From Klebsormidium nitens (taxonomy: Eukaryota; Plantae; Klebsormidiophyceae): a stretch of 64,000 bases of DNA. Each line of letters begins with the position of its first letter. The first letter of the stretch is position 1. This document shows, piece by piece, positions 15,501-63,286 of this stretch. Under the pieces are notes generated by a model that was not told the origin of the DNA, did no database searches, and saw only the letters and a list, made by a program, of their open reading frames with translations. A program made the position numbers and the translations under genes. The stretch covers positions 1 through 64,000 of the forward strand of contig DF237141.1 of NCBI GenBank assembly GCA_000708835.1, written 5' to 3'.

Positions 15501-18500
15501 TCTGCACCGCGCCTGTGACTTTCATGCGGACGTCCGGAGGCACCGCCAAATCCAGTGCGGACGCTAGTGACTCTCCGTTGTTCACCGCCGCCACGACTTG
15601 CTTCTTCTTCTCCTCGGAGAGCGTTCCCGGAAGTGCCACGTCAGCAACGTTCAAAAAGCTCTCAGCGGTCGCGGTCGCGATGCCCTTCTCGTCCACGGGA
15701 GGCGGGGGGGGCGCCTCGTCGGATTCCGGCCCCTTCTCGGCGGCTCCGGAATCCGGTCCCAGAGCGGCGCCAGATGCGCCCCCTTCCTTCTTGCTGCCGT
15801 CAGCTTTCGCCTTTCCCTCGCCACTTGTGCTACTTTCCGACGCTTTCGGATCTTGCGAACCATCTGTCTTTTGCGCCGCCTTCGCTTTTAACTCCCCCTT
15901 TCCGTTCTTATTTTCAACATCACTTCTTCCGTCACCGGATTCAGCGTCCCCGTCTGCCGTTCGTGCAATCCGCTCTCCGTTCCGACTAGAATCAGACCCC
16001 GCCCGGGGTTCGCCCTCCGGCCGACGACCGCTTTCTACTCCGCTCGCTTCCGACCTCCCCGTCTTCCCACCTTCCTCCTTCCTTCGTTCCAAAATCGCTT
16101 CGCCGTTCTCTAGAAAAACTTCTTCGTCCGCGTCTACTGTTCCTGACTCAATGGGCTCTCTCTTTCCTTCGACTGCCGCTGCAGCCTTCCCTACTGCCTT
16201 CCCTTTCTCTTTCGCATCTGCTGACCGCTCATCGGCCCCTTTCTCCTTTTTCGCCAGATTCGCTTCTGCCCTTTCCCGCCCCTTTTCCTCCGCCCTCTCC
16301 AACTCTACCGACGTCTTCGGATCTACTCCAACCTGATCCTTTCTCGCCTCTAGTTCTTCCACGCCCGCAGCCGTGACATTTCCCGTCCCGTTCGGAACCC
16401 CCGAAGTCCCGTCCACATCCTCGGACGCTTTCCCGGACGCGGACGCAACCTCCGAACCGTTTTCTGCCCCGTCCGGATCCTCGGAAGCCTCCGACCTTCC
16501 TTTCGCGCTCACTTCCGCTGGCCGGTTCTTGGACTCAGAAACAGCGTCCGAATCGTCCTTCCTGCCGTCCGAAACTTCTAAACCCTTGTCCGACGCCCTA
16601 GGCACCTCCTCCGACTTGGACGAAAGGTGCTCTGCCTCTTCTTTTCCGTCCGGGTGTTCTGGTGCCGAATCGTTCGCTTTGGCGTCCGAAGCTTGCCCTA
16701 CGTCAGCAACACCTTGTGCTTCGGCGCCCGAAACTTGTCCGACGTCAGCGACGACTTGTGCTTCAGCGCCCGACGCTTGTCCTACGTCAGCAACGACTTG
16801 CTGAGACGGAGACCCTGCCCCATCCCCCTGCCCGTTGTCCGAAACCAAGTTTGCTTCGCTCTCTTGCATTGCAGTGCCTGAGACCAAGATCAAAAGCGTG
16901 AGTGGGTCAGAATGGGTGTTGTAGTCCAAGAATGAGTTCTTCAGAGCACAGCCGTCAAACACTTGCAAAAACGTCGTCTACTTGGTCCTCGTTTGTGGAG
17001 AGTACGACCACAGTCGGAACCCAACGTGCGTAGATGAAGGATAACACCCGAAAGGCAAAAAATAAATCAAGACTTGAACCCTCTTCTTGGCTGAGCGTGG
17101 GCTTTGTTTGGGAGACACTACGCAAAGCGAATTCTACGCGACCAAAAGCTACGTTCTTTAATAGAATACACTACGAAACCAGAACGTCTTGATCTCGTGG
17201 CACTCCTGGGGCGTGACAGCGATGAGACGACTCGTATGATCTATACGGCAGTGAAGACTGTGTCGGCTTCGAAACACCCAAGCATCGATCACCAAATTCA
17301 TCAAGAAAAAAAACGTTAACAACCCGTACTGACAAGTGGCACCTTGCCAAACCTCACCTGCGCCCAAAGTAGGTACCCCTTTCTCACTTCTATCTGCGTT
17401 TTCAGAAATGCGTGGATCCTTCCCCTTCAGCAGTGCAAGCTCGACGGCGTCCAGCCACTCAAGTGCCACGTCAGCAGTCCAGCCGCCCAGCGTCCGGCTG
17501 ACGTCATGCGCGCCACGTGTCAGCAGGAGAGTGGTGCAAGGGTTGCTGTGGATGGCCGCACGGGGGATCGCTGCTGCTGGAGCCTCCACGTCGGTTGCAC
17601 TCTGCAGATTGAGTGATCCGCTATCAATCGACCTTGCATTACGAAATCAATAGAATGCGAAAAGTGGGGATGTATTAGAACTCTGTCAACTCAACCTTCA
17701 ATCAAAAATTCAGCAGTCAGACCGTACTTTCAAACCCGTAAGGATGATGCGGAAACCATACAAGAAGCGTTCTGTGAGACTTAACTATAGGAAGGCGCTT
17801 TCTCATTACGTTGTCAGATAGATTTGATACCCCAGTATCAAGCAAAGCAATTTGCTCCAAAGGTGGCACTCAGGAAAATATACAGTCCCGTGGCGGTGTC
17901 GCAGCTGAAAGGGAGCCATACCTGGATAAAGAGCAAGGGCGTATTCACACTCGGGACATGGCCCCCGCAGCTAGCCGACCCATAGTACGCCTCCCGTGAA
18001 GCGAACCCGTTTGCTGGTGAGGTAAAACGGTCGTCGAACTCCGCAACAGAGGTCGCAGCCATGGCGGGTTCGACGTCGTTGAAGTGGCCTTCGAACAACG
18101 GCTGTGGAAGATGAGACAATGTGGCTGACGTCAAATACCGGCATCGAAGCATAACGTTCTGGTATCCTGCCGCCAAAGAGTTGGTATCAGAGTTTAAGCC
18201 CCAGCACTGGGCCCAGCTAAAAGGGGCCCAGCTAAAAGGGTGATGACATTGCGTAGACGCCCTCTTTAACCCGACTCTTAACTTACCAGATGCTGCCGCA
18301 GCAGTTCTGTCCTCTCCTTTGCGAGTGCCTCTCCGCGCTCCTCGTTCCCAGGCCTTGTCAGATTCTCGGTCGACGCAGCCAAGTCAAACGGGCAGCCCAC
18401 CGCCACCGCCGCGGCGATGGGCAGGGCCTCTGAGGCCCTCTCCTCAACGTACTTGACCTGCAGATGCGACGTGAGAGTTTGGGGTGAAGAACTTCGACAA

Positions 18501-44500: not shown

Positions 44501-45676
44501 ATGGTCTATATGGTCTCGTGCGTCGCAATGCCGACAGTGGCTGCTCTTGCTGTCATGCTGGCTCGGTGGAAGGGCAAGAAGCCTGCCCCGTCTGTCCCCT
44601 TGTCAGGCAAAGCCCCCTCTCCTGAGGTTCAAGAAAGTTCAACAAGCAATCTGAAGTCCTGCAGTGATGACAGCATAGCATCCCCCCAGCATTGCAGAAA
44701 GCGGAGGGGAAAGTCACAGAGAAAAGAGAGCAATGAAAAGATTATTAGGCGGGTCACCAGTTGCCCCGACTTTGCGGTTGTTCGGGTGCTGAAAACGAGC
44801 GCCAAGAGCGGGCGGCAGGCGTCGTACAGCAACCTCAAAGATCGGCGCCTGCAAGACGAGATTGCGAAACTGGCTGATAAGCTATTGCACCAGGCAGAGC
44901 GGCGGTGTGAATGGGGGCAGGACTGTGGGTGCGAATGGGGGCAGGGCTGCCAAAAGTGGGGCTGTGACTGTGGAGAGAGTTGTCAGCAAATAAGCGCTTT
45001 TGGTGGGGCGAGCGCAGAGTGGTTCTCAGATGCGGCGATGTCAGACCGGGGTCGAAAGGCGTGCGCGTCGCTCGATGCGCTGTGGGCCAGGCGCGCGGTG
45101 ACAAACCGGGCGAAACAGGTGGAGAACTTTGTGACGAAAGGGATCCCCTCAGAGGCGGAGGGGCCCTCTGGGAATAACCGCGCTGTGGCAAAGCAGGGAA
45201 CGGGAATGCAGGGTGATGCGACGGTCGGGGTTGGTAGGAAAAATGAGCAGAAAGTAGGGGGGGCGCTGATGGGGCGATTAGACTACTACGACCAGCTGCG
45301 GCTGGCCTTGTTTGAGAAAACAGATGCAGCGCGAGTGAGCGTCCGTCGCTCGCTTCTGTCGGGGGCGCTGGCGAGGCCTGGAGACTGCAATGTGGTGAAA
45401 TACTGGGGAAACCAGGATCGCGCCGGCGGCGTTGCGGAAGCGGGGCTGAGGGGAGAAAGCGACATGTTGTGGAGTGTCAGCACGGATGCAATCGTAGAAA
45501 GCTGGGATTTGAGGGCGGCGCACACACCGGTGCTGCGCCACGTAATGCAGCTAGGGGAAGGGAAGTGGGGCGTGAAAGGTTTGGAAGTGACTGGCTCGCA
45601 GCTGCTTGTCAAGTTGGCCGCTGAACAGGAGATTAGCTTAGACGGAAGAAGACTGACGGGAGCAGTGACATGTTGA
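44501..45676 (+). CDS. intronless orphan protein: N-terminal hydrophobic anchor, Cys/Trp-rich segment, C-terminal WD40-like fragment
   Basis: 391-aa ORF with ATG. N-terminal PTVAALAVML-ARWKGKK; CEWGQDCGCEWGQGCQKWGCDCGESC; LWSVSTDAIVESWDLR resembles one WD40 blade. Confidence 0.6.
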   Translation: MVYMVSCVAMPTVAALAVMLARWKGKKPAPSVPLSGKAPSPEVQESSTSNLKSCSDDSIASPQHCRKRRGKSQRKESNEKIIRRVTSCPDFAVVRVLKTSAKSGRQASYSNLKDRRLQDEIAKLADKLLHQAERRCEWGQDCGCEWGQGCQKWGCDCGESCQQISAFGGASAEWFSDAAMSDRGRKACASLDALWARRAVTNRAKQVENFVTKGIPSEAEGPSGNNRAVAKQGTGMQGDATVGVGRKNEQKVGGALMGRLDYYDQLRLALFEKTDAARVSVRRSLLSGALARPGDCNVVKYWGNQDRAGGVAEAGLRGESDMLWSVSTDAIVESWDLRAAHTPVLRHVMQLGEGKWGVKGLEVTGSQLLVKLAAEQEISLDGRRLTGAVTC

Positions 45677-46989: not shown

Positions 46990-48169
46990 TCTCTCAGTCT
47001 AACAACCTCTGCGTGCCCGGCAGAGCAGGGTACCTCCCACAAGTAATACAACTCCACTACCTCAATCTTAAGAGTCATATCTGCTAAGCAACTTCGAAAC
47101 GCTGAGGGCCATATATCATCCAAAACAGGGTGGCGTACAAACTGAGAAGACCCACAATAACGTTCCAAGCAATAAAGATAGATGTGGGTTTAGAGGGACG
47201 TCCGACTGACTGACGACTTGAATCCGTTGTACCGATTGCCTAGCTGCTTGCAGTTATCTGGGAATCCAACATAAGTGTTCCTTTTGGGCGCTTTGCGTAG
47301 TTTCAAACTCAGCCTTGTGCCCTCCCTCCCTTGAGCCCTTCAGACGGGTCGGGCAAGATTAGCGGCCCCAAGCTTCGGACAGCTGTCCTTGGTATCAATT
47401 CGTTCATCGCCGCGAAGGTCATGTAGACAGCCAGGACCACCACGAGAATAAAGGTGACCCGGAGATATGCAAGTATGAGAACCTCTGCTTGCTCGCGGGC
47501 AGACAGCTTCTTTCATTTTTGAGTTGTCTTTGCGCTCCGAATCCCTTGTCTCTTCTCGAATTTACCAGATTAAGACCGTGATGCCGAATCCACGGGCGCA
47601 GCGAGCGGCCGTTCAGAACCCTCCTTTCCTGCCCTTTGTCGATTCCACATTTAAGCTGCTCCGAGTCTGGTATACCGTATTGTGCTGCTTCCTGCGAAAG
47701 CAGCAGGGGCATACCCCACGAAGTCCATGATGTGCATCCTTAAAAGGATCAAAGTTGCGCAAAGCACCTTAAAGAACGAAGCCCAGTACTTGACGGTTCT
47801 CAAATGACAGGGACGCGTACGCACAGCGGTTTCGACCAGCCGCGGCTGATTACACGCGCTGTTGGGCGCCGGTACCTGGTACGATTTGCAGTGGGCCCAA
47901 CGAATGTGAACTCAGGCTCGAATGCTGATCGAAACGCGTCTTCGGGGAAAAACCATGGCCAGCATCTAATCACCTTGAGAAGACCAGCGTCTGTTTCTCC
48001 AAATAGGGAAACGTTACGTCCGAGGCACTTCTTGAGCAGAAACTTTTTCATCACATCTGGCTCGGGGAGATTCAACCGGGCACCCGGGAAGCTGTGCTGA
48101 AGCCCAGCGCACCGCAGAGCAGACGCATACATGTAAGTCACACCAACAAGCCATTGGCCGTTGCTTCAT
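46990..48169 (-). pseudogene. decayed paralogue (copy E) of the unknown membrane-protein family
   Basis: Homologous blocks in shifting frames: ARLNLPEPDVMKKFL..LLKVIRC; YQVPAPNSACNQP..VKYWASF; AMNELIPRTAVRSLGPLILPDPSEGL; LSLKL..YVGFPDNCKQLG; SIFIAW. At least 4 frameshifts and 2 stops (e.g. TAA 47651-47653). The 3' boundary is approximate. Confidence 0.85.
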
Positions 48170-48346
48170 ATTGCCAATGTCCGCCTCTTGGCGAGCCTCG
48201 GACTTCCTCAATGCTGCCGGATTTTGGAGTCGACAGTTTTTAGCTCCAGCATCAGAAACTTCCAGAGTGCGCGGCAGCCCGGCCGTGGCAGCTGCCTCGC
48301 GGCCGCACCGCGGTCAGGGTTCGGCATACATGCCAGTGCCGGTGCA

Positions 48347-48356
48347 CGCGGCCGCG
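48347..48356. promoter_or_regulatory. CGCGGCCGCG palindrome upstream of copy E
   Basis: Exact 10-bp palindrome ~180 bp upstream of the ATG. Confidence 0.5.
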
Positions 48357-49393
48357 CGGTCGCACGCTCCGGGTGGATCAGAAGGCAGCTTTAACATCAC
48401 GTCACCTCGTGTTTGAAATAACACAGCCGTCATGAATATCTCAAGAGGGTAACAAGAGCGTCAGCGCAGCAATCTCGACGTTCTCGCGTCACGTGCGTGT
48501 TTCATTGTTGCTTTATCTGTCTGGCGACGCTTAGCTTCTGCCTAACTTCTGGCGATAAAGATCCTACGGACTCCGTAATGTTATTCTGGCCCCCTTCTGC
48601 TGGACCCACGTTCTGTCCTTAAGCTGAGCTGACGCACACTCATACGCCTCGACGAGACGCTCTTGTTGCCGTTCGCTCAGGTCCGAGTCTCTCTTCCTCT
48701 CTGATGAAGTTCTTATCAAGAAGCCCCATGCCAGGCTCGCTCGTTACCGTGTTGCTTGAAGAACACGGCTCCAGGAGGCAGAGACGGTGAACATCGTTAT
48801 CTCGTACGCATGTGGAGCTGACGCCAAAGGTACGCATGTGAGTCACCGCGAGCAATAGCTGTCGCTAGGCATTAATATGGGAACCAACGGAGAGCCTACT
48901 GAAAGTCTCATTAGGGGCGTATATATCTGCATAGGTCTGATAGAATCAAGTGCCCGATATGCCAATACACATGAGTGGCTGCACTCTCCGCACCGTTGCA
49001 TCGTCTGCTTGGGCCAGTACTCTTGACATGAGACACGAAAGAAAACGCAAGATCAACATTCAAACCAATAAGCAGCATGTGCTACTGATGCCACGTCTGT
49101 TTGAACAAGTCGTCGGAATTGAAGGTCCATTTGAAGCCACGAGTCGTCGATCAGATCAGCCACTTTGTTATCATGAGGCATCTGAAGTCGAGGTAACATG
49201 CCGGATTGGAGTAAACATCAATACGAGACATCTCAAACTCTACTGCCAACATCTTGTCCGTCACGTCTAGTAACGCCCACTCCTTAAAGAGCGGACCAAA
49301 GCGCTTCTCTTGTTTCAAATTTTCCTTGATACAGTCTCACGTTCCGGTCCAGCATAGTGATAGATTGATTGCTAGATTAACGGCTACTGCTCG

Positions 49394-50584
49394 TTATTGA
49401 CAGAGTTCACCACTTATTCGAATGGGACGTTTGCCCATTTCAGTCTCGATTTCTCCCTTCCGTTCTATAAGCTCCACACGCAGAGCAGAGGCTACTTCTT
49501 TCAGCTGGTCGGCCTCGCACGTCCCGAGGAAGAGGAGAACAAGCGCCACATTTCCCGCGACGCTCAGAATGACGACCCAAAAGGCTGCCAAGTACAGGTG
49601 AAGGGACCCCAATTTTGTCAGCCACACAAGGAGGAACCGCTTCGACTTCGAGGGTCCGGTTTTCGCGGGCGCCTCGATGCCGCCGTACGGGTCGCCCAAG
49701 CGTTCGCAGTTGTCCGGAAAGCCCACGTAGAAGCTCATCTTTGGCGTTTTGCACAGCTCCAAGCTTAAGCTTCCGTCCATCTCTTTTAGGAACTGGTTGA
49801 GGCCCTGTGAGGGGTCCGGCAAAGCAACCGGCCCCAGGCGCTGAATGGTCGTCTTTGGGAACATCTCCTTCATTGCCGCGGAGGTCGTGAAGGCAGTTGC
49901 CACCAGGATGAAGATCAAGGAGAGCATATCATAGGATGTGATGAGATTACTGGCGTGCTCACGCGAGGCCATACTTTTCACACGCTCTTCCGCGTCCGCT
50001 TCCATTTCTGATTCATAATCAGGTTCCGCGAACGGATCCCCGCCCGCTGCCTCTTGGGGTGCCGCTTGTGGTTCCGACGCAGGCGCTTCCAGATCCGGAG
50101 CGGAGGGCTCTTCCGGCGGACTCGCTTTCCAGCGGTTTTCCAAAAAAGTACCGGCAGCGAAAGGGACCCCCAGAATCACGGTAGAGAGGAGTAAAAAAGA
50201 CAAGCTTACGTAGACTGCTATGAACGAAGCCCAGTACTTAAAGGAACCCACGTGGTGATGATGCACAACAGTCTCTACTGGGGGCGGAAAGTTGCACGCC
50301 GTGTCAGGTGCCTGCACTTGGTAGAACTCGTAGGCAGGTCCAACGCTTTTCTTCGTGCTTCTAAGTTTTGGTTGGCACTTGATGACCTGGAGAGGTCGGG
50401 GGCCCTCCGCTCCAAACAGGGGGTTGAACAGATTTGTGGCGTTGTTCATCAGAAAGCTGTTCACCAAGTATGGCGCGGGGAGAGTCAACCGGGAAAGCAC
50501 TGGCCCGCTGCTGGAGCCCTGGACTAAGGTGGAGGTGACAGAGATGAGGAAAAACACGGCGGCTACAGCAGGTAGCCGGTCCAT
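49394..50584 (-). CDS. unknown-family signal-peptide multi-pass membrane protein, copy A (396 aa, intronless)
   Basis: Uninterrupted ORF with signal peptide. Blocks RLTLP.PYLVN.FL.NNAT, PLQVIKCQP, GPAYEFYQVQAP.T.CNFPPP, PDLEAP and LGPVALPDPSQGLNQFL...LSLELCKTPKMSFYVGFPDNC.RLGDPYGG are shared with B, C and D. Confidence 0.9.
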   Translation of the reverse strand: MDRLPAVAAVFFLISVTSTLVQGSSSGPVLSRLTLPAPYLVNSFLMNNATNLFNPLFGAEGPRPLQVIKCQPKLRSTKKSVGPAYEFYQVQAPDTACNFPPPVETVVHHHHVGSFKYWASFIAVYVSLSFLLLSTVILGVPFAAGTFLENRWKASPPEEPSAPDLEAPASEPQAAPQEAAGGDPFAEPDYESEMEADAEERVKSMASREHASNLITSYDMLSLIFILVATAFTTSAAMKEMFPKTTIQRLGPVALPDPSQGLNQFLKEMDGSLSLELCKTPKMSFYVGFPDNCERLGDPYGGIEAPAKTGPSKSKRFLLVWLTKLGSLHLYLAAFWVVILSVAGNVALVLLFLGTCEADQLKEVASALRVELIERKGEIETEMGKRPIRISGELCQ

Positions 50585-50824
50585 ATCTGCTCGCTTATAG
50601 GTGAAGCGGCAGAGCGTCTTGGCAAGGAATAACCAGTATGTATGTGACAGGAAGATGGGAAGAATAAGCGTTCAAAAAGACGCCGCTGTTGTAAAGTGGA
50701 GAGCGAAGCTGCTGTTTCCGCATTTTTTGAACGCTCTTCGAAATCTCTCTGCTTTCGAAACTGGATTTGTTCACACGTTAGTGTGGTGACCCAAGCCCAC
50801 TGTGTGTGGTGACTTGGCGGGCCG

Positions 50825-50834
50825 CGCGGCCGCG
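50825..50834. promoter_or_regulatory. CGCGGCCGCG palindrome upstream of copy A
   Basis: Exact 10-mer ~240 bp upstream of the ATG. Confidence 0.5.
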
Positions 50835-50937
50835 TCGACAGATTGACGCGGTGCTGCAGGCGGCAGCGCGCAAACTCACTCTCCTTGCACTCTCAAGGTT
50901 ACGTTACCTTCTGGTAAGAAATATGTTATAAATTTGT

Positions 50938-51643
50938 TCAGAGCGATTGGAGCGTCGGCGTAGCAATCCGAAAGCTGTGAAGCGTCCAATATGCATCAAT
51001 CGTCGGTTCAATCCCGGCCGCCGACTTTTCGAAACCTTCCCTTTTGTGAGCTACGTTAATTACCAGCGTTTGTGCGGTCAATTCCTGCGCGAAGACGTCT
51101 TCGCGCACCGCGTCCAGCCGCTCGTCAAATTTGTCAGTCCTACTTTCGACCTTGGTAGAGATGACATCCATCGGGCGCTGCCTCTGTCCCCAGGGCACGG
51201 GCAAAATGGCGCCCCTCCGACCCTGCTCTTTTTCAAAGTCGGTTCAAAGGTCGATGACGTGTCCAGAGTCTGGAGATGGTTGGCGACATTGCTGTTCAAG
51301 TCGGAAGGCAAAGTAGTCCTGTGACGAAAACGGAAAGGGATTGACGCGAAAGCTTTCTGGCGCCAAGATGAATGACGCAGACATCGGCACTTCCATTTTC
51401 ACTCTTTCGTCGCTGCGGAAGTGTGACGGACTCGGGTTCAACCGAACCGGAACGAGAGGCGGGAGCTTTTCTACTCAGCTCGGAGCTCTCCACAAAGTGA
51501 CCCCCGGCCCCTGAAATACAACCGACCTGCACAACGGAGCGATTGAAAGACGAAGCCGCAGACGTCACTTTCTTCTGGGTCGACTGTTTCCCAGGCTTGC
51601 GAAAAGCGCTATCTACCCGCCCTCCTCGCCTGGGCTTTCCCAT
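50938..51643 (-). pseudogene. possible decayed unknown gene (two same-frame ORFs split by a TGA at 51244-51246, plus an upstream ATG ORF)
   Basis: QDYFAFRLEQ...HVIDL*TDFEKEQ...ILPVPWG...SAAGIEPTIDAYWTLHSFRIATPTLQSL. A more degraded homologue lies near 54250-54420. No family recognised. Confidence 0.3.
50954..51029 (+). ncRNA. tRNA-like element 1 (degenerate tRNA or tRNA-derived SINE head)
   Basis: 7-bp acceptor stem GTCGGCG/CGCCGAC, then TAGC at positions 8-11. T-arm GTCGG-TTCAATC-CCGGC. 72 nt followed by TTTT. D and anticodon arms are non-canonical. Confidence 0.5.
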
Positions 51644-52759
51644 CCCGTTCCACAGACCTTATATTCGGACCGGGCGTTTACTAAGCCTGGCTTAATGATT
51701 GCCCGGTAAATGTTTGCTCTTAGTTCACTGCCTTCCGCTTCCCTGCTCTTTTTCTGTCATACTTATGTGCGCTGCGAAGCGCTCCGCAAAGGCCGACCCG
51801 GGCAGCCACAGGAGGGTTTCTGACGCCCGCGGCTGGCCGCGCGGCCGCATCGTTCAGATTACTCCGGGCGGGCACAAAGGCTTACTCTACAGTATTGTTT
51901 CTGTGTTGACTTCAACAATGTTGATTCGTGTGCCATGAACTTTACAGATTCAGCCATCGACCTCCATATTTCTTAGGTTTTCTCCTTCTTTGCAAAGCTT
52001 TTGTCCAGCACTTTCCAATGTATGCTGGATATTCCTAGACCAATACAATCTGCACGAGTTACAGAAGCTTATAGAATCTTCCTTTTGGATGATTTTGAAG
52101 CCCTCTCACTCGCGCTCGATTCAAGTCCACGGTACTAAAATGTTACTTTCTTTAGGAGGAAAATCAGGAACGAGGTACCAACGCTTACTAAGGCGGCTGT
52201 GCTGATTAACGGCTGGGAAGGCCTAGCAACATTGAAGAACAATGAAGTAACGCGTTTGAGAGGAATTGTGTGTTCCCATCGAACTAACTCTGCAGTAGTA
52301 AACATGAGTGCGGGGCTCGTGGCGTAGTGGCTGCACGCGAGAATTTTAAGCCGCTACGTCGCTTTGTTGCCCTAAACATAAGTACCAGATTCACCATTGA
52401 AAAAGCATGCTTTCATGCATTCAAAGGTCCTTGTAGATCCGGCTGAATGCATCTAAATCTCGGGGCCCATTAAAATCATGGGAGCTGCTAGCTTTCGGTC
52501 TCGAGAATCGCTTCCCTTATCAGAACGTAATCGACATTAAGATAATGGTCCGAAGTAAAGACATTCTGCGACGAGACAAAGTAGACCCTACTTGTTTATC
52601 GTATCTACTAACTTCCTCTCATCAAACAACCAGAACGTTAAAGCTTCTCTTCCTGTTGAAACATTTTAACAGAGTTACCGATTCCTGGCAAGCATAATTG
52701 ATAGGATAGCTGCTACTGCGGAAGTTTTAATCGGACCGAGAGAACCATGTCTTCGATTG

Positions 52760-53914
52760 TTACCTGCGCGAGTCATCCGCCGTTGCTTCCTTCAAATGTA
52801 TAAGCTCCACACGCAAAGCGTAAACAACTTCCTTCAGCTGATCGGATCCGCACACCCCGAGAAGAAGGCGGATGAGCGCGATGTTTCCCGCGACGCTCAG
52901 AAGGACGATGCTAAAGGCCGCGGAGTACAAGAGCAGGGACGCCAGTTTCGTCAGCCATACAAAGAGCCCCCGCTTCGGCTTCGAGGGTCCGGATTTCGCG
53001 GGCGCCTCGACGCCGCCGTACGGATCGCCCAGCCGTCCGCAGTTGTCCGGAAAGCCCACGTAGAAGCTCATTGTCGGCGTTTTGCACAGCTCCAAGCTTA
53101 ATGTCGCGTCCGTCTCCCTCAAGAACTGGTTGAGCCCCTGCGAAGGGTCGGGCAAAGCAACCGGCCCCAGAGGCTCGATTGTGGTCTTTGGATACATCTC
53201 CTTCATTGCCGCCGTAGTCGCAAAGGCAGCTAACACCAGAACGAAGATCAAGGTGAACAAAGTATAAACACCGATGAGATCCTTAGCGGTCTCAAGGGAG
53301 GCCACACTTTTCACTCTTCCTTCACTTTCCGCTTCCGCTTCCGCTTCAGATCCTTGTCTCGGTTCCTCGACCGGATCGCTTTCTTGCGGTGCGTCTGAGA
53401 TCGACAGCGGCGCTTCCAGGTCCGGAACGGAAGGCTCTTCCAGTGGAACTGCTTTCCAGCGTTTCTCTAGTAGGGATCCAGCAGCAATAGGAACCCCAAG
53501 AAGCGTTATCATTAGAAGTGCGAGGACCAAAGTGAGGTAGAACCATGCGAACAAAGCCCCGTAAACAAAGGAGCCCAAGTGATGATGACGCACAACAGCC
53601 TCCAAGGGGGGCGGAAAGTTGCATCCAGTCTCAGGTGCCTGCACTTGGTAGAATTCATAGGCAGGTCCAACGTTCTTCTTCAAGCTTTTAAGCAACGGTT
53701 GGCACTTGATGACCTGGAGAGGTCGGGGTCCCTCAGCTCCAACCAGGGGGTTGGTCCAGTTTGTTGCGTTGTTCACCAAAAAGATGTTCACCAAGTATGG
53801 CTCGGGGAGAGTCAGCCTAGCAAATTCTGGCCCGCTGCTGCTAGCGCTCCCAGCAAGGGTCGAGCTGAGAGCAAGTAGGACAAAGATGAACGCTGAAGTA
53901 GAAACCCGCGCCAT
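52760..53914 (-). CDS. unknown-family signal-peptide multi-pass membrane protein, copy B (~384 aa, intronless)
   Basis: Uninterrupted ORF. Likely ATG at 53914 (MARVSTSAFIFVLLALSS). Same conserved blocks as A and D. Confidence 0.9.
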   Translation of the reverse strand: MARVSTSAFIFVLLALSSTLAGSASSSGPEFARLTLPEPYLVNIFLVNNATNWTNPLVGAEGPRPLQVIKCQPLLKSLKKNVGPAYEFYQVQAPETGCNFPPPLEAVVRHHHLGSFVYGALFAWFYLTLVLALLMITLLGVPIAAGSLLEKRWKAVPLEEPSVPDLEAPLSISDAPQESDPVEEPRQGSEAEAEAESEGRVKSVASLETAKDLIGVYTLFTLIFVLVLAAFATTAAMKEMYPKTTIEPLGPVALPDPSQGLNQFLRETDATLSLELCKTPTMSFYVGFPDNCGRLGDPYGGVEAPAKSGPSKPKRGLFVWLTKLASLLLYSAAFSIVLLSVAGNIALIRLLLGVCGSDQLKEVVYALRVELIHLKEATADDSRR

Positions 53915-54164
53915 ACCTGCTTCACGGTGGGAATTCGAAGCAGGAGATTGTGTAAGCCAAGGACGTTTTGCCAAGAGGAATTCGCGTCTCAGAAATCAGA
54001 GGACCGCTGGTGTGTCAGTTAGGTAGCAAGAATGCTGCTTCCGCTTTAGCGAACGATGTTCTGCTGCAGCTGTCTTCTGCTTTCGAGTGTTCAAGCGCGT
54101 GTCTTGTTACCGGATCAGCGCCGCGGGCGCGTCGAGTCCGCGGCCGGACGACGCAAAGGATGCA

Positions 54165-54174
54165 CGCGGCCGCG
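54165..54174. promoter_or_regulatory. CGCGGCCGCG palindrome upstream of copy B
   Basis: Exact 10-mer ~250 bp upstream of the ATG. Confidence 0.5.
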
Positions 54175-54267
54175 CGCAGGATCGCTCTCTTTCAAGAGGA
54201 AGTAACGTCACCTTGTGTGCACCAACTTGTTGAATACATCATAAAATTTTCTGAGAGCAGTTTGAGA

Positions 54268-54337
54268 GTCGGCGTAGCAATCTCAGACCAATGAAGCAAT
54301 CATTCATAAACTGCCGGTTCGATCCCGGCCGCCGACC
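54268..54337 (+). ncRNA. tRNA-like element 2
   Basis: Acceptor GTCGGCG/CGCCGAC; TAGC; 5-bp stem ATGAA/TTCAT around a 7-nt loop GCAATCA; 5-nt variable loop; T-arm GCCGG-TTCGATC-CCGGC. The D-arm is short and unpaired. Confidence 0.5.
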
Positions 54338-54666
54338 CCCCTTCCACATGTCTTTCTTTTTGCGAGCTCTACCCATGCCAGCGTCTGCTGTAATCTTTTG
54401 AACATTGATAGCTTCAGAGACCCGGTCGGTGAATAGTGAACTGCTTTTTGGATGGTCGCGCACGCTTGCCGGCGCAAAGCAATGTAGACAGCACTGAAAG
54501 AACCCGACTGCAGTAGCAGCACGCTCATTCGACGACTTTCGCAAGAACGAGATTGAAATGGAAGTTGGTGACGGACTTTGGGATTAAAGGTAACCTGGTA
54601 TCAGACTGACTGTTTGCTAGATTCGACTTCGCTTGAAGCCGCCAATGCATTCAGCTGAAAATGCAC

Positions 54667-54710
54667 GCACAAAAGGCCGTCTTCACAGGCACAAAAGGCC
54701 GTCTTCACAG
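54667..54710. repeat. perfect tandem duplication, 2 x 22 bp
   Basis: GCACAAAAGGCCGTCTTCACAG twice. Confidence 0.9.
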
Positions 54711-55652
54711 GGATTCTTACCATGTCGGAGACCCATAAATCGTTGACTGATTCTCTCTTGATCGACTATATGCTGAAAGCGGCAAGGGTAAGCGCAATGG
54801 TCCTATACACCCTTCCCATTGGAAGTTCGAAGTCGAAGAGCACAAGTACTGAGTCACCATGACAGAAGCTCAGCATAGTCAGAATGGTAGCCCAAGTGGT
54901 TATAGGCCTGCCTGGCCTAAAGTGGTTGACGAAGTTTCACGCAGTAACTTTCAAGCGTTGCTGTCTTGGTCGCTGAGCAAGATATCGATCCATCCGAGTC
55001 AAGAGATTCAGACCGTCATGGCTGATGAATTGGCTTCATCAGTGTCAGGGTCGTGCTATTCATAATTCTTCAACCTAAGTGACATGCTGCTCGAGAAAGA
55101 CGGATGTCAATTACATGATTTATATTCCACTTTGAATTGAATGTCCGCATCAGAAACATTTGAACGACTCTGTCCATCCATCTAACTAACCGGATCGCCG
55201 AGAACGTTGATACGTTGGTATTTGCCTTGAGGCTTCAACTTTTCAATGTTGATTCCGCATTGAACATCCAAAACTTGCTGATCTAAGATGGAAACCTGCC
55301 CGGCCGAGTCTTACCGCATACTAAGGAAAATCACGCTCGGAAAGGTTTTGGTACAAGATACATACATCGAAGACAAGATTCTGTCGGAAAATGAATGTCA
55401 CAGATCCGTTGCTTACTGCGCTTTCTTATCTACACATTCTGCTTGCCATCCTTATCGCATATCCATGTGATTCATTTTAAGCTGGTAAACCCACAAATCA
55501 TGATCTCTTCACTATGCGAGTTGGATAGCTCTCTTCCTTGCAGCCAGATTGCCGATGACCAATAGTATCTTTGATTGGTCCTGACGGCTCCAAAGAAGCG
55601 TAGCTTAATCTTCAGGGCCGGGAAAAACACTTCAGACAGCAACCCGCTGCTG

Positions 55653-56835
55653 CTACGCACTTCCCTTCCAAAAGCGACATCCACTTCTTCGCGGAATATT
55701 AGCGCGACTCCACCTGTCGGGTTTTGTGGCCTCAACATACTCTCTAACCGAAAGCAGAACGGCGTGCAGCGAAAAGGAGACGTCCTTCAGCTGCTCAAGC
55801 GTGTATACCCCGAGAAGAAGGTTAAGAAGGACAGCATTTCCGGAGAGGCTAAGAATGATGAACCAATATCCGCTCAGGTAAATGCAGATAAGCCCTGCTG
55901 CTTGAATCCAAGCGAGAAAGAACGACTTCGATTTAGACCGCGCCCCACTCTTCACAGGTGCCTCAAGTCTGCCGTACGGACTCCCCAGCTGTTTGCAACT
56001 GTCTGGAAACCCCACGTAGAAGCTCATCTTTGACTTCTTGCACAGCTCCAGGCGCAGACTCGCGTCCGAATCTTCCAGGAACTGGTTGAGTCCTTGCGAA
56101 GGGTCTGGCAGGTCAACCGGCCCCATCCGCTCGATGGTCGTCTCCGGAAGGATCTCTTTCATCTGTACGGACGTCACCAGAGCAGCCAAGCAGAGCAACA
56201 GATACACCGTAGTCCAGAAATAGGTTAGCTTGAGAACCTCCGCTGCTTGGAGGGGAGTAATACTTGCCAATCGGCCATAATACTTTGCTCCAATTTTTGC
56301 TCCTTCCTTAGTCTTGCTGGAGGCTGCGGTCTCTTCACATTCTTCACAACTTGACGCCGGCTGCCAGTCAGGCGCTTCCAAGTCGACAGGCTTCGGTTCC
56401 GAGCGATCCCTAAGAGCATAGTTGACTTCAAGAGGTATCTTGAAAGCGATAAGTAGTACAAGGATCCAGATCAGACTCACAGAATGCTATGGAAAGCAGC
56501 CAGTACCAGATTCTTCCCACATGGTGATGATGCTCGGTGGTCTCCACAGGCGGGGGGTGCTCGCATGCGCTGCTTGGTGCCTCAACCTGGTAGAAGTCAT
56601 AGGCAGGTCCAAACCTCTTCTCCTGCACGAGCTTTGGCTGGCACTTGATCACCTGAAGAGGCCTAGGAATTCCCTTGAAAAGAGGGTTCGTGCACTTTGT
56701 GCAATTGTTGATCAGAAACTTGTTCACCAGATCTGCCTCAGGAAGGAGCAACTTGACGCATGAGCCGTTGCTGGCGCCCTTGACAGAGCAAACTGCTAGA
56801 AGCAGAAAGACGATGGCCACAGCATACCTCCCCAT
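55653..56835 (-). pseudogene. unknown-family membrane protein, copy C, frameshifted in TM1 at ~56481 (pseudogene, assembly indel or spliced variant)
   Basis: The N-half (MGRYAVAIVFLLL...GPAYDFYQVEAP...HHHHVG..YW) and C-half (VSLIWILV...DLEAP...LPDPSQGLNQFL...MSFYVGFPDSC) are in different frames. The junction reads GCA TTC T GTG AGT. Confidence 0.8.
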
Positions 56836-57272
56836 CTTTGATGCTTTGCAATCGACGATATCCTCTTTTGAACGTATCAACTGCTAGAATCGTTGGAGCG
56901 CCAGAGGTGCAAAGCCGATTGTGCAAGAACCCTACAGAGGGCGCCTTTGCCTTGTTTCCTTGTTGCCTTGGTTGCTTTTCTGACCCTGCAAGATGTTATT
57001 CGCAACTCTCAGTAGTTGCTCACGCTCATTCTCCTTGCCGCTGTACTGCACTAGTGAGCCTGAGGCGCTGCTATATATTTTTGCGGCTGCTCTCTGACTC
57101 TATTGTGGACACTGGAACTTCGCTGATTGCAAACTTCGAATTGGAGCTGGAGTTCGTGCAGGCCGCGTCGCGTTGGGAACGCGCCACCCGGGCGACCGCG
57201 ACTCGCGGCGAAACCCTGAACCCTTCACTCAACAACCGCTTGATGCGCGCGGCTGCCGCGCGTCCAGGCGCG

Positions 57273-57282
57273 CGCGGCCGCG
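57273..57282. promoter_or_regulatory. CGCGGCCGCG palindrome in the spacer shared by divergent copies C and D
   Basis: Exact 10-mer within a CGCG-rich block at 57245-57285. Confidence 0.5.
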
Positions 57283-57615
57283 TTGGAAGTGTACGCGCTA
57301 TGCGGCTTGGCAAGAAACTTGTCGAGTCCGCACTAGTCCCTGTACGCAGTCTTATGTAGAGAAGCGCCTTCGCAGCACTTTCGATCACACCTGTGTGCCT
57401 TGAGAGAGCCAGACCCTTTTCCTTCGCTGCCAACGAGGATTGAACAGACTCAGAAGCTTGGCAGTAGGAAGGAGTGAACAAACCCAGAAACAAAACATTC
57501 AAAAGGACTGGAAAGGAGAACAGCAACGCTGCGGCTTCTCATTAGACGTAGCGCCCTTTCATCCCCGCAAGACGTCCTTGGCTGAGACGACTGTTCGCCT
57601 TGATTCTGAGGAGGG

Positions 57616-58794
57616 ATGGGGCGGCTTTCTAAAGTTGCTCTCGTCTTTTCTCTTTTTGCTCTAATCTGCGCCCTGGTCGGAAGCGCCAGCAGCAGCAGCG
57701 GACCGGTGTTTGCCAGGCTGACCCTCCCTGAGCCTTCTTTGGTGAACAGTTTCCTAATGAACAACGCCACGGACTGGACCAACCCCCTGTTTGGATTGGA
57801 GGATTCCCGACCACTCCAGGTCATCAAGTGCCTGCCCAAGCTTGAGAAGATGAAGCATACCTTCGGACCTGCCTATGAGTTCTACCAAGTGCAGGCACCT
57901 GAGACCGCCTGCAACTTTCCTCCCCCCCTGGAGACTGTGGTGCGTCACAACCACGTGGCCTTCTTTGAGTACTGGGCTTCGTTCATAGCTTTTCACGCAA
58001 GCTCCGCCATCGCCGTGTTTTTTACCGCCGTCATTGTGGGGTCTCCTTCTTCTCTCGGTAACCTCATAGACGGGCGCTGGAACGCGATTCCGCCGGAAGA
58101 GGTTTCCGCTCCGGATCTGGAAGCGCCTGCTTCGGAAACCCTCCAGGGCAGAGTGGGCAGTGATGCGATCGAGGATCCGGTACAAGACTTGGAACAGGGA
58201 CCGGAGATTCAAGGGCGTTTGAAAAGCGTTTCCTCGCGTGAGTACGCAAACAAGTTCCTTGGTGCTTGGTGTGCGTTACCGACGATCTTCATTCTGGTGT
58301 CAGCTGCCTTCGCGACTCACGCGGCAATGGAGGAGATCTTCCCGAAGACAACGGTCGAGCGCGTGGGGCCTGTCGCTTTGCCGGACCCCTCGCAGGGCCT
58401 CAACCAGTTTTTGCAAGAAATGGACGCAAGCTTGAGCTTGGAGCTGTGCGTTACGCCGAAGATGAGCTTCTACGTGGGCTTCCCGGACAACTGCGGACGG
58501 CTTGGCGATCCGTACGGCGGTGTTGAGGCGTCCGTAAAGACCGGACCCTCGAAGTCAAAGTCGTTCTTCATCGCTTGGCTGAAAGAAGTGGTGTACCTAC
58601 ACCTGTACTTGGCAGGCTTCTGCTTCGTCCTTCTGAGCATTGCGGGGAATGTCGCGCTCGCTCTAGTTATCCTCGGGGTGTACCGGTCGGATCAGTTGAT
58701 GGAAGTCGCTTCTGCTCTGCGTGCGGAGCTTATAGAAGAGAAAGACAGATTCGAGGCTGAAATGAAGCGGGGAAATCAGTCGAATGCACGGTGA
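57616..58794 (+). CDS. unknown-family signal-peptide multi-pass membrane protein, copy D (392 aa, intronless, inverted)
   Basis: Uninterrupted ORF with the same conserved blocks as A and B. Confidence 0.9.
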   Translation: MGRLSKVALVFSLFALICALVGSASSSSGPVFARLTLPEPSLVNSFLMNNATDWTNPLFGLEDSRPLQVIKCLPKLEKMKHTFGPAYEFYQVQAPETACNFPPPLETVVRHNHVAFFEYWASFIAFHASSAIAVFFTAVIVGSPSSLGNLIDGRWNAIPPEEVSAPDLEAPASETLQGRVGSDAIEDPVQDLEQGPEIQGRLKSVSSREYANKFLGAWCALPTIFILVSAAFATHAAMEEIFPKTTVERVGPVALPDPSQGLNQFLQEMDASLSLELCVTPKMSFYVGFPDNCGRLGDPYGGVEASVKTGPSKSKSFFIAWLKEVVYLHLYLAGFCFVLLSIAGNVALALVILGVYRSDQLMEVASALRAELIEEKDRFEAEMKRGNQSNAR

Positions 58795-59660
58795 AAAACA
58801 GCTTTTACTGCAGCCAAATCAGAAGCTTGCTGGGCTAGCTCGGAAAGTGTGACGTTTATTTGAGGAAGCCGCAGAGAAGCGGTCCGAGTGCGCCACAAGT
58901 AGACGCTAGCAAGTGTGACGGACGCTTGAAATCTTAAGTTAAGCAGTCCCATTATTTCTTTGGCGTCGGATACCTTATGACAAGGCGAAGGGATTGGATT
59001 CGAAGGTCGGGACCAATCGCTGGAAGCTTCGAATTTAATCAAACGAAGCCTAATCTTAACCCATGGAACCATGTGCTTGCTTTTTTCTAATTCATGATCG
59101 ACTTGAGCTATATATGAGCCTTAACTGTATGACTACTGTTATAGTTTGTGAATCTAATTCGATGCTTGCATATGCATTCACCTCCATGTTTCGCTCTTAT
59201 TCCATCAAGACTGTGGCATGCAAGCTCAAGTTCAAGCTCATGTGGCACGAGGCCGTGCATGATGCAGACGTACAATAGAACGAGATGCAGCCGCGGACTG
59301 GAGTATATGCTGGCTGTTCATGCATATGAACTACAGTGAATTCGAAGTTGTGGTAAAACGAGCTGTAAGTTACTTCACACGCCATAAACCGAGCTAGATA
59401 CCCTATTCTCACCATGTCCAGCGCAGGTCTATAACGGTAAGGCTAGCAAACTGTCAATACCGTCTAAGAGGTACGTATGTACGTGGTCGCAAGTGACAAT
59501 ACCTCTTCACCGGCCTTTCTCCAAAAAGCAATCGCTGGCCTAGCCTGGCCACAACCACCATGATTATGGTCAACTAGACTTCCAGACTGGCAACTAATGG
59601 AAGCCAAACCTGGTGGCCCCTTCGCCCAAGACAAGTAATACCTAAGAAAGTACTAGCGCC

Positions 59661-62600
59661 TCAAGCAGCCGTTGTTCTACTTCGTCGCCTTTTGTCTCGC
59701 TGCTCCTGAATGCGCAGAACAGCACAGATGAGCGACCGGAAGCAGATGAGCGAGCGTACGAAGTGGAGTTCGGTATTTTGGATACTGGTAAGTTAACAGA
59801 CCTGATTGACACAGCAAGCAGCTACTGACAAGTAGAAGCAGAGAATCAAACGAAGCGTTGGGAGCTACAAAGAAGATCCGCGTCGGTACTGGCCAGCCAA
59901 AGATGCCCCAGGTCAAGACTGGCGTCAGTCCAGTCAATCAGGGCCCCAGGACATGAGAGAACAGCTGGTCAAAATCAAGACCGCAAAGCCAACCGTTAAG
60001 CTCTGTCAAAGCGCTCAGGAACCAAGGCAAATCAGAACTTCGCCTTGCGGATATCGCATGGGATAAACATCATTCGCTTGCGCCGAGTTTCGAGAACTCG
60101 GAAGCACCACGCAAGACGAGCGACAAGTGTCGACCTAAGAAGCAACTGCAGCTATCCGGCGGTCGAAATGCCTCATGCGGAACCTTCATGAGAACCCCTA
60201 CCAAACCTCGCAGTCTCTCGTATGATTTGAGAGTGGGCCACACAGAACCAAAGCTCCATAAGAACTAGCTGGATCGATCTTACGCACCTTGTCAAACGCG
60301 AGCGCCTTTTCCTTGAGCTCAATGGCCCGCTTCCGCTTCTCCGCCTCCTCCTTGCTCCCGGGGCGCCCCCCCGGGTCCTCCTCCGCCCCTGCCCTGAGGG
60401 TGTCCTCAAACCTCCTGCCAGGCTCCTTGACCCGGGCACTTAACCCGCTGGTTATGCTGCTCCAGGAGCTCGTGACCGAGCTCGGTGTGGGCGGACCGGA
60501 CTCTCTGGACGGGCTTCGGACGGCGCCGCTTTCGCCGTCCGCAGCTGGGGAGAACTCCCCCCGTTGCTTACGGAGCTCCGCTGGCGGAATGGAAGCGGTT
60601 CCACGCCGTCCAGCGGAACTCGCGTTTCCACCCGGACCGGACACTTTGGACGGGCTTCGGACGGCGCCGAGTCCGCTGTCCGCAACCAGTGAAGTTCCCC
60701 CCGCTTGCTTCCGGAGTTCCGCCGACGGACTGGGGGCCTTTCCGCCCCGTCCAGCGGAATTTGCCGGCCCACTTTGCCTCGTTCGTTCCGCCGAGCGGGC
60801 CTTGTTCCGTGGGGGTTTGGGCAGAGGACTGAACGACCTCGAGCGCGCGGCCAGGAAGGTGCCTTTCCCGGCGACCATCCCCTTGCCCGCAGCAGACGCG
60901 GTCGCCCTTCCGGACGCAGAAACTGGCCGCTGCTCAGCTACTGTGGGCCGGCTCGAAGAAAGCTTTGCGATTTGGGGTGTCTTCCGGTCTTCTATCCGCT
61001 GTTCTTGACCCCCCGCCTCTTGTTGTCCCAAAACTCCAGACCCCCCTCTCCCCGCCGCTTTGCCGATGTCGGTACGAACCCCTCCTGACTCCGACTGCAA
61101 ATCTGATCCGTGCAGAGAATTACCTAGATACGGTGACAAGTATTCTTCTCCTTCAGCTTCTATGCCTTTCTCAGACGCTGTCAGCCCACGACCGAAAGCT
61201 GGCTCCGAAAAGGGTACACTCGACTGCATGCCGGTGCCTCCTTTCGCTAGCCTCCCAAAAGCAGGCGACGGATCCGAGACGTCGCTTCCCCGCCAGGGCG
61301 AAAAGTCTGCGGATCCTGCGAGCAGCGAATCTGGGCCGTCGATGTCCAGCGCGGCAGCCCATCCGACGGACGAGAGTGACGCGATGTCGACCCGGCCCGC
61401 AACTGGGGGGAGTGCCCGCCTTTGCTCCGGACTTGCAGAGTTTTCTGGCTCCGTTCGAAGCTCGCTCGCTTTGGAAAGATCGCCGCTCCCGCTCCGTTCC
61501 GCTTCTGTTCCGTGCAAAGGGGCCCCCGACCGCACGTCCGAGTCCTCGCGAAGCGGACTGTTGGCGTCCGCTTCTCCGCCGCTGACGTCAGCAGTGCCGG
61601 CTTGAGGGGAAGCATCATCCGCCATTACACTCGATACACCGGCAGTGTCGCCACTCGTCGGGCTGGTGACGTCAGCACTCGCTCCCCCCCCAGCTTCGTC
61701 CCTTCGAACCGCGTCGCTGTCTCCGGGGGATCCCCTCCGATCGCCCACATCCCTGCTCTTTTCCCTCACACCTTCCCGGTAGACCTCCCTGCTTCCGTCA
61801 TCGGGCGGCCCGCTTCCAAGAAGGCTGCTGACGCTCTGTGACGTCGCCACGTGTAGCCTTTGATCCAGCTTCCGCAACTCTCCGGCCAGGGCCTCCAGCT
61901 GTTCGTCGAACGTCAGCAGCTCCGAGGGGCGGTCGAGCAGCGCCAGGGCGGCCGCGACGTTCGGAGGTTTGAAGGTTTGCGCGGCGGCTGGGGGCGACAG
62001 CGATCGCCGCAGAAGGTCTTCCGCGAAGTGCGCCTTGGGCTTCTGCAGGGGAGGGGGCTGCCAGTGATTGGAAGACATGTCTTCGCTGGGAAGGAGACGG
62101 GGGCTGAGCGGGAGCGGCGCGAGCGACAGGGCCTCTTCGTGGAACTCTGCCTCAGCTCTGCTTTCGGAAGGCCCTGCAACGGGCGCCGCTGCTTCCGCTC
62201 TTCCATCCTTCCGTTCTGCGCCTTGCCCCGCCTGCCTTTCCGTGGAGACGGAACGTACCTCAACGCCGCTCCTCGGCACAGCAGCTCCCAAACTTTCCTC
62301 CTCCGAAACCCCTTCCTCCAAAGCCCTGAACCCCTCCGACCACTCCTCAGAAAGTGGCGCCATCTGTGTGCCCGTTTGATACGCAGCCGGAGCCGCAAGG
62401 AGCGAACTGCTCCGGTACTGCCACGTGGTCGTCAGCGACTGGTCGCTGGGAGACAACCGCTCGGACAAAGCTGGGCTAGACGGATTTGAGCTCTCGACAA
62501 ACGGAGCAAGATCGCCCGCATCGGGTGACTTTCCGGAATGGTTGCTCTCTCCCGCAGATCTTTCTTGCTCGGCCCCTCGAAAAGCAGCCTCCCTGAATTC

Positions 62601-63286
62601 GCGGCCAGCTAACGTTGACCCTCCTCCTTCGGGAGAGCTAATGGCCGAGTTGGAAGAGAGCTCGCTCTTTCCTGAAGACCCTTCCCCAGACTTTCCGGTC
62701 TCGCCAAGCGCAGTCCGTTCCGTTTCCGCCGCTTCCGATTCTTCCGAGCTGGTTTCGCTGAGCCCCAGCGCGGCCGCAATCGACGGCCGCCCGGTTTCCG
62801 CGGACGGCTCCGCAGCCCGCATGTCAAAGTTAAGGCGACCGTCGAGGGCCGTGACGTCAGCATCTTCACTTTGCTGATCATCACTGGGATCAAGTTTCTG
62901 GGCGTGAGGACCTTCAGAGTCTGACGCCGAGTCGGGGGAAGCCCTGACGTCACGATGCACGTGTGGGTTTCCGGCAGGATTCACATGGGGGCTTTGACTA
63001 ACCGGGCTGGAACCAGAGGTGGTTAGGCTGAAGCTGGAGACGGTCAAAGTGGCCGCCAGGAGGGAGGCAATCGTCGTCGACGTCAGCGTGGCGTCAGCAA
63101 CGCGCTCAGGAGGCGCAGTCCCAGGGAGGAACGCTTCGACTACTGGAGGCAGGGCGACGTCAGCAGGGCGGCCTTCCGTGCTGACGTCAGCGGCCGGAGC
63201 GTCGGACGGCTTGGATTGGGACGAGGGGGGCAGGGGCGGGCGGGCGTTGCCGTCTGAAGTGCTCGTGGTGGGTGTCGAAGGGAGAC
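59661..63286 (-). CDS. 3' part of a large Ser/Ala/Gly/Pro-rich disordered protein with a C-terminal basic helix; 3-kb internal exon 63286-60288, probable last exon 59705-59661; 5' exons unresolved
   Basis: The frame is stop-free from acceptor TCTGCAG (63287) to donor AAG|GTGCGT (60288). A candidate last exon gives KALAFDK|EQRDKRRRSRTTAA*. No family recognised. Confidence 0.6.
60490..60790 (-). repeat. coding repeat, 2 x 141 bp (AELRKQ....S..ADS(G/E).GAVRSPS..SGP)
   Basis: GGACGGGCTTCGGACGGCGCCG at 60507 and 60648. Confidence 0.8.

Follow-up and report, generated by a model that had tools for sequence, protein, structure and literature searches.

What are the proteins encoded by a tandem cluster of related genes in the alga Klebsormidium nitens, and what might they do for the cell? 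The cluster lies in the 64,000-nucleotide stretch analyzed here (contig DF237141.1 of assembly GCA_000708835.1, positions 1 to 64,000, belonging to scaffold kfl00192; hereafter the window), where a list of open reading frames (ORFs) and tblastn revealed five homologous loci between 47.1 and 58.8 kb. Our work indicates that these loci encode membrane proteins of a new family, each built of two copies of a unit in which a hydrophobic segment precedes a small ectodomain with a cysteine pair, and that the family is restricted to Klebsormidium-like algae. We hold this anatomy, the internal duplication, and the restricted distribution with high confidence; combined with the mechanism proposed below, in which the ectodomains would form an extracellular binding module, the picture as a whole becomes an even call.

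Loci of the cluster and anatomy of the encoded proteins

The cluster comprises the following loci.

47114 to 48081, minus strand: copy E, a decayed pseudogene (tblastn against A)
49394 to 50584, minus strand: copy A, an intact ORF of 396 amino acids, KFL_001920110
52760 to 53914, minus strand: copy B, an intact ORF of 384 amino acids counted from ATG, KFL_001920120
55653 to 56835, minus strand: copy C, with one 2-bp deletion, KFL_001920125
57616 to 58794, plus strand: copy D, an intact ORF of 392 amino acids, inverted and head-to-head with C, KFL_001920130

The preliminary description of this DNA had named the same five loci in the same states, and the ORF list and tblastn bear it out on all of them. 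At the amino acid level, B is 67% and D 61% identical to A, and the two pieces of C are 40% and 58% identical to it. The tblastn alignment of E to A (28% identity across residues 31 to 338) changes frame between positions 47881 and 47917, and a 256-codon piece of E contains 6 in-frame stops. C is split over two frames, both of them open apart from a 2-bp deletion near position 56480, inside the part coding for the first transmembrane segment; the deletion is defined relative to the orthologue of C in a second alga (L001:550-1686), to which C is 79% identical at the DNA level. An independent contig from run X1 (window 56461-56838) is identical to the window across the break, with zero differences, and the frameshift is thus not an assembly error of the window.

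The anatomy of the proteins can be followed in copy A, the parts of which are encoded as follows.

50516 to 50584, minus strand: signal peptide, residues 1 to 23
50249 to 50515, minus strand: ectodomain 1, residues 24 to 112
50138 to 50233, minus strand: first transmembrane segment (TM1), residues 118 to 149
49946 to 50137, minus strand: acidic loop with a DLEAP motif, residues 150 to 213
49868 to 49945, minus strand: second transmembrane segment (TM2), residues 214 to 239
49625 to 49867, minus strand: ectodomain 2, residues 240 to 320
49511 to 49621, minus strand: third transmembrane segment (TM3), residues 322 to 358
49397 to 49510, minus strand: helical tail, residues 359 to 396

This succession of a signal peptide, a Cys-pair ectodomain, TM1, an acidic DLEAP loop, TM2, a second Cys-pair ectodomain, TM3, and a helical tail had been proposed before, and hydropathy, AlphaFold2 modeling, and conservation agree with it. 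The hydropathy peaks of A lie at residues 3-24, 118-149, 214-239, and 322-358, TM3 being long (~37 residues). AlphaFold2, run on an alignment of 64 sequences, gave a pLDDT of 79.5 and a pTM of 0.64, with the ectodomains above 90 and loop residues 155-189 disordered; an alignment of 7 sequences gave a pLDDT of 48.7. Each ectodomain has two conserved cysteines 15-27 residues apart (C70 and C97 in ectodomain 1, C278 and C293 in ectodomain 2), which 57 or more of the 58-61 family members compared retain. Ectodomain 1 also carries an NAT sequon at residue 48, and the DLEAP motif occupies residues 164-168.

Which parts of the protein face the outside? Across the family, N-glycosylation sequons occur at 2.1 and 1.1 per 100 residues in the two ectodomains, at 0.6 in the loop, and at 0.3 in the tail, and lysine plus arginine make up 7-8% of the ectodomains and 13-16% of the loop and tail. 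The enrichment of sequons in the ectodomains and of basic residues in the loop and tail supports a topology in which both ectodomains would lie outside the cell or in the lumen, with the loop and tail in the cytosol.

The preliminary description overlooked the homology between the two ectodomains, a relationship that is new here. With 56-61 sequences per block, hhalign matched ectodomain 1 to ectodomain 2 at 96.4% probability (E-value, 1.3e-9) in an alignment of 44 columns with both cysteines among them, and one half of the protein to the other at 95% (E-value, 3.4e-8) over 96 columns. In the half-versus-half alignment, which begins in the hydrophobic segment preceding each ectodomain, the signal peptide and TM2 are paired. 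With 7 sequences only, the probability was 10% (P = 0.003). In distant members, LPDP..N.FL opens both ectodomains and is followed by L.L.C, then FY, and then C, and the unit can be written as L-P-[DE]-P-x3-N-x-[FY]-L ... L-x-[LV]-x2-C ... [FY]-Y ... C. The matches of ectodomains and halves show an internal duplication, and the protein thus consists of two copies of a unit made of a hydrophobic segment and a Cys-pair ectodomain.

A His-rich stretch lies just outside TM1 (residues ~104-115 of A, window 50240-50275) and reads HHHH in A, RHHH in B, HHHH in C, and RHNH in D. Family-wide, the histidine content of this segment is 5.1%, compared with 1.7% overall, and two or more histidines occur there in 16 of 57 members. 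The stretch may be a metal- or pH-sensitive site.

We read the genes as intronless. The ORFs of A to D align colinearly among themselves, and the second alga has uninterrupted ORFs that are likewise colinear with them, which makes this reading better supported than the published gene models. The window ORFs match four NCBI models, KFL_001920110, KFL_001920120, KFL_001920125, and KFL_001920130, three of which are probably wrong: KFL_001920110 has an unrelated 5' exon in place of the conserved signal peptide of A, KFL_001920130 removes 22 residues of D, including TM2, as an "intron," and KFL_001920125 splices across the frameshift of C, a probable pseudogene (window 55653-56880). The neighbors are spliced. 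An intron interrupts the catalytic domain of a PARP gene, the two parts of which fall in ORFs 3754-4608 and 4952-5755 (plus strand; positions 20-72 and 75-198 of the Pfam profile). The peptide deformylase ORF in the window covers profile positions 41-104 only. The earlier remark that intronless copies stand amid spliced genes is therefore sound.

Distribution, novelty, and age of the family

A word-indexed search found 9 proteins, and an exhaustive profile search of 1.84 billion cluster representatives returned 71 matches at an E-value of ≤1e-3, 58 of them at ≤1e-10. Sixty-nine of the 71 are real, and the other two are repeat-protein artefacts. At least 14 K. nitens gene models belong to the family, spread over 9 scaffolds that include KFL_00039, 00074, 00192, 00197, 00330, 00362, 00423, and 00484. 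No land plant, other alga, bacterium, or virus is among the family matches in the profile search, and word-indexed searches with the 64-sequence profile and with a half-unit profile added zero organisms and zero single-unit relatives.

Where do the other members come from? We traced the sources of the first 9 matches and of 30 of the new representatives, and all are K. nitens models or Logan contigs except P0018, which stems from a Joint Genome Institute (JGI) metagenome with eukaryote-like contigs of 75-103 kb. The five Logan representatives with retrieved contigs all belong to run SRR23617307, the second alga mentioned above, where the genes are again uninterrupted ORFs in tandem (contigs L001, L002, L003, and L004), in a collection whose gene calls can find intronless copies only. 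Copy C and its counterpart in this run, P0005, have a synonymous divergence (dS) of ~0.25 in the N-terminal piece, and the second alga is hence probably another Klebsormidium species.

In three representatives, P0010 (KFL_000390070), P0012 (KFL_003300020), and P0052 (KFL_003620120), a single model combines two family copies or portions of them. Either such fused models, for example one of 679 amino acids with two full units, reflect genuine tandem fusions, or gene prediction has joined neighboring genes.

The family appears to be unrelated to any described family and thus new, in agreement with the preliminary description, which could not recognize it. Pfam yielded nothing below an E-value of 0.4 for the five window proteins and no family for the 64 members; the unrelated small transmembrane families FAM163, TMEM52, and CYYR1 were each matched by one member, at E-values of >0.001. 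Sequence searches of PDB chains (phmmer and hmmsearch) returned only designed coiled coils and transmembrane segments, i.e., hydrophobic or low-complexity noise. Whole-model fold searches with Foldseek against PDB and BFVD, with VIA-align on 48,161 chains, and in the ESM Atlas gave long-helix matches within noise only, and a feature search of the ESM Atlas came back empty for the whole protein as well as for ectodomain 2. In the literature, the four gene ids of the cluster, KFL_004230020, and run SRR23617307 appear in no paper found, and a general search likewise returned nothing on the family.

Intronless genes in many copies and with low expression, lying amid spliced neighbors, would also be expected of cargo derived from a virus or transposable element, for example from an endogenous giant virus. 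We regard such an origin as very improbable. The predicted viral structures in BFVD contain no match, which also speaks against a viral envelope or membrane glycoprotein, and the genes flanking the arrays in both algae are host genes (PARP, peptide deformylase, and histidine kinase). In a blastn self-comparison, similarity between the units at the DNA level is confined to the coding sequence (72-77% identity), bar one 97-bp element described below, and there are no flanking repeats. Family fragments were found nowhere else in the 64-kb window, the GC content of which is ordinary.

How old is the array? A phylogenetic tree unites the window copies with three genes of contig L001 in a single clade (support, 100/99) that has three lineages: P0015; C with P0005 (paired with support of 100/99); and D with the group of A, B, and P0003. 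The order and orientation of P0005, P0003, and P0015 on L001 correspond to those of C, B/A, and E in the window. E finds its best match in P0015, the intact third gene of the second alga's array (39.5% identity versus 28% for A), and by this measure is its orthologue. The tree and the shared gene order argue that the three lineages of the array (E-type, C-type, and A/B/D-type) predate the split of the two algae. Since then, in K. nitens, A and B have arisen by duplication, C has been broken, and E has been lost. The preliminary description spoke of tandem expansion with rapid gain and loss; the gain and loss are evident from the A/B duplication and the two dead copies, and the rapidity is not, given that the three lineages were already in place before the split. 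The cluster has changed by birth and death within an old array, at no especially rapid pace.

Selection, expression, and the proposed role

Pairwise ratios of nonsynonymous to synonymous divergence (dN/dS), calculated by the Nei-Gojobori method among A, B, D, and P0003, are 0.40-0.44 for the whole gene (0.42 for B and for D), and they differ markedly between the parts of the protein. Ectodomain 2 has the lowest dN/dS (0.17-0.19), followed by ectodomain 1 (0.31-0.43) and TM3 (dN/dS or the corresponding ratio of uncorrected proportions, pN/pS, of about 0.5); pN/pS is 0.54-0.67 in TM1 and 0.88-1.24 in TM2, and the loop has a dN/dS or pN/pS of 0.67-0.93, TM2 and the loop being close to neutrality. 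Gene conversion as the source of the conserved ectodomain 2 was considered and rejected: synonymous divergence there (pS, 0.37-0.43) is as high as elsewhere in the gene, which points to purifying selection on the protein instead. Judged by these substitution patterns, the genes are real and under selection.

This distribution of constraint bears directly on the suggestion in the preliminary description that the family comprises immune or recognition receptors. Receptors caught in an arms race, tracking variable pathogens or mating partners, would fit the tandem arrays on many scaffolds, the very large copy number, the pseudogenes C and E, and the lineage-specific A/B duplication, and low or absent expression in standard culture is usual for inducible genes. 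However, the exposed domains are the most conserved parts of the protein, not the diversifying ones, and the variation resides in the transmembrane segments and the cytosolic loop. Together with the age of the three lineages, this leads us to regard the suggestion as improbable.

The same values weaken the other function proposed earlier, that of a ligand-gated or oligomeric channel whose subunits would have three or four membrane helices. The proteins are polytopic, their two outer loops each have a conserved Cys pair, and TM3 is as long as noted above. In these respects they resemble pannexin, innexin, and connexin subunits, which are polytopic four-helix proteins with two Cys-stabilized extracellular loops, a cytosolic loop, and a tail; the family proteins are likewise polytopic, measure ~350-400 amino acids, and have conserved cysteines in both outer loops. 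Pore-lining helices are normally conserved, however, and few parts of these proteins are under less constraint than TM1 and TM2. In addition, the N-terminal hydrophobic segment resembles a cleavable signal peptide, which leaves three transmembrane segments, and the two loops are homologous to each other, two further differences from the pannexin-like subunits. None of the 64 members matched a Pfam channel family, the pannexin, innexin, and connexin families included, and no channel fold was matched, with no such chain in the wide rows of the VIA search. Pannexin, innexin, and connexin families are not known in green algae. We therefore give the channel little credence.

What, then, could the proteins do? 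Because selection is concentrated on the outer domains and is weak on the helices and the loop, the most likely of the readings, in our view, is a protein of the cell surface or endomembranes that presents a conserved binding module and is anchored by its helices; the binding module itself we propose only tentatively. In the mechanism that we envisage, the genes code for real proteins of a large family confined to Klebsormidium-like algae, and these proteins would be membrane glycoproteins of the secretory pathway. After a cleavable signal peptide, ectodomain 1 would lie outside or in the lumen, TM1 would lead to an acidic, disordered cytosolic loop, TM2 would lead back to ectodomain 2 on the outside, and TM3 would be followed by a cytosolic helix. 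The two homologous ectodomains, each with its cysteine pair joined in a disulfide bond, would be the selected, functional part, and the membrane spans and loop would be anchors and linkers. Paired, the ectodomains may bind a non-polymorphic partner, for example a component of the cell wall or matrix or another copy of the protein, and the protein may serve as a surface sensor, an adhesion protein, or a wall-contact protein. Coupling to the cytosol could run through the short motif [DE]-[LVIM]-[EQ]-A-P, which lies in the loop of the window subfamily and in the C-terminal tail of a short (~320 amino acids) subfamily and may be a cytosolic docking site; it is present in 18 of 64 members versus 0.66 expected from shuffles.

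In the short subfamily (e.g., P0053, P0056, P0057, and P0071; L003:7796-14300), this tail is strongly conserved as [KR][KR]V[YH][NS][VI]E[ML]QAP.GS.V-COOH, and it is missing in the window copies. A C-terminal valine is present in 22 of 64 family members, the background frequency of valine being 8%. The conserved tail could act as an endoplasmic reticulum export signal or a PDZ-type C-terminal signal.

Two further groups of known proteins are among the closest to the family. Plant DUF26 proteins (the cysteine-rich CRKs, CRRSPs, and PDLPs) have two homologous disulfide-stabilized ectodomains, form large lineage-expanded tandem families, and presumably bind a conserved carbohydrate-like partner through the ectodomain. 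The proteins described here share the two homologous disulfide ectodomains per surface protein and the lineage-expanded tandem arrays. However, DUF26 domains are adjacent and reside on a single-pass or secreted protein, whereas the family ectodomains are separated by two transmembrane helices and a cytosolic loop and are linked to no kinase; the signature C-X8-C-X2-C is absent, and PF01657 was matched by none of the 64 members. Tetraspanins and claudins are small polytopic surface proteins in which conserved, Cys-bonded outer loops bind and the helices serve as a scaffold. The family proteins are similar in size, topology, and the conservation of Cys-bonded outer loops but differ in loop sizes, cysteine pattern, and internal duplication, and Pfam and fold searches matched neither tetraspanins nor claudins.

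Are the genes expressed at all? We searched 24 K. nitens runs, presumed to be RNA, the contigs of which cannot show absence. Twenty of them, from eight studies, contain next to none of a 9.5-kb stretch of the cluster, and four runs of one 2024 study contain 6-10% of its sampled words. Mapped on window positions 52800-58799 (copies B, C, and D), these four runs give nine short contigs with a depth of 2-7, the shallow fragments amounting to 2.5-11% of the stretch in the four runs. The contigs fall on the N-terminal half of C, the middle of D (58171-58577), and the spacers between C and D and between B and C; B itself is without any. Expression, if any, is thus at most very low under the sampled conditions. 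A published account of the high-light response offers a comparison with the neighbors. Its table of differentially expressed genes includes kfl00192_0010 to 0050 and none of 0110 to 0130 (PMC9121098, supplement). The expression table lists kfl00192_0020 as a PARP2 homologue and kfl00192_0050 as a peptide deformylase homologue (PMC9121098, supplement), and the former, which corresponds to the two PARP ORFs of the window, is given as induced by high light (PMC9121098).

A family that is largely silent and decaying, or called upon only at an uncommon stage of the life cycle (zoospores or resting cells, for example), is a serious rival to the binding module, if an unlikely one; the window cluster would then do little or nothing in vegetative filaments today. 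It would account for the next-to-empty runs, for the shallow fragments that include spacers, and for the absence of the cluster genes from the high-light table that includes their neighbors; two dead copies among five and a dN/dS of ~0.4 also fit. Against it stand three ORFs of ~390 codons that are still open after a dS of ~0.6 and the clear purifying selection on ectodomain 2, which suggests that for most of that period the proteins were produced and under selection. Moreover, the read mapping covered B, C, and D and not A, and contigs are no measure of absence.

Several observations nevertheless weigh against the binding module and the new family that would carry it. No full-length assembly of any copy was found in the 24 runs, the shallow fragments, partly in spacers, could be background or DNA, and the exact ORFs of A and D are recorded in no public assembly. 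Constraint on the gene as a whole is rather loose (dN/dS near 0.4), and two copies out of five are dead. The count of members with the [DE]-[LVIM]-[EQ]-A-P motif is inflated by relatedness. Finally, the whole-model fold searches barely probed the small ectodomains, which may have a remote link to a known small disulfide domain.

Flanking features and the place of the family in Klebsormidium

The 97-bp element is the only non-coding similarity in the cluster. It is present in two copies, both identified by blastn self-comparison.

50930 to 51025, no strand assigned: upstream element of A, about 350-440 bp from its ATG
54244 to 54336, no strand assigned: upstream element of B, the partner of A's element

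The two are 75% identical over 97 bp (E-value, 4e-11) and sit about 330-440 bp upstream of the ATG, at an equal relative position for A and B. They may represent a shared promoter or 5' untranslated region element.

Two long, uninterrupted ORFs flank the cluster, and neither has a Pfam match: one of 391 amino acids (44501-45676, plus strand), with a Cys/Trp/Gly-rich repeat CEWGQDCGCEWGQGCQKWGCDCGESC, and one of 949 amino acids (60198-63047, minus strand). Two further ORFs on the minus strand, of 625 amino acids (11592-13469) and 799 amino acids (14569-16968), are of low complexity and rich in Ser, Gly, Ala, Pro, and Glu; the C-terminal half of the latter is Pro-rich.

Klebsormidium is a reference organism for the way streptophyte algae cope with life on land. 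For now, the wider importance of the family is moderate, as it is restricted to one genus-level group. Within that group, dozens of members, no relatives elsewhere, and an internal duplication make it a concrete case of how a gene family is born and expands within a lineage, and the family can be defined by its two-part signature, with selection preserving the ectodomains rather than the membrane part. We consider it possible, though short of probable, that the cluster leads to the founding of a new family, perhaps with a new small disulfide ectodomain fold, which appeared and grew to dozens of tandem copies in Klebsormidiophyceae alone, a group of early-diverging, filamentous, land-dwelling streptophyte algae. 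Its proteins would be arranged as a pseudo-dimer of two homologous outer domains on a three-helix anchor and serve as a surface sensor or adhesion system specific to that lineage. The family is also a candidate for lineage-specific cell surface biology, which may include filament adhesion, contact with the cell wall, and sensing of the environment.

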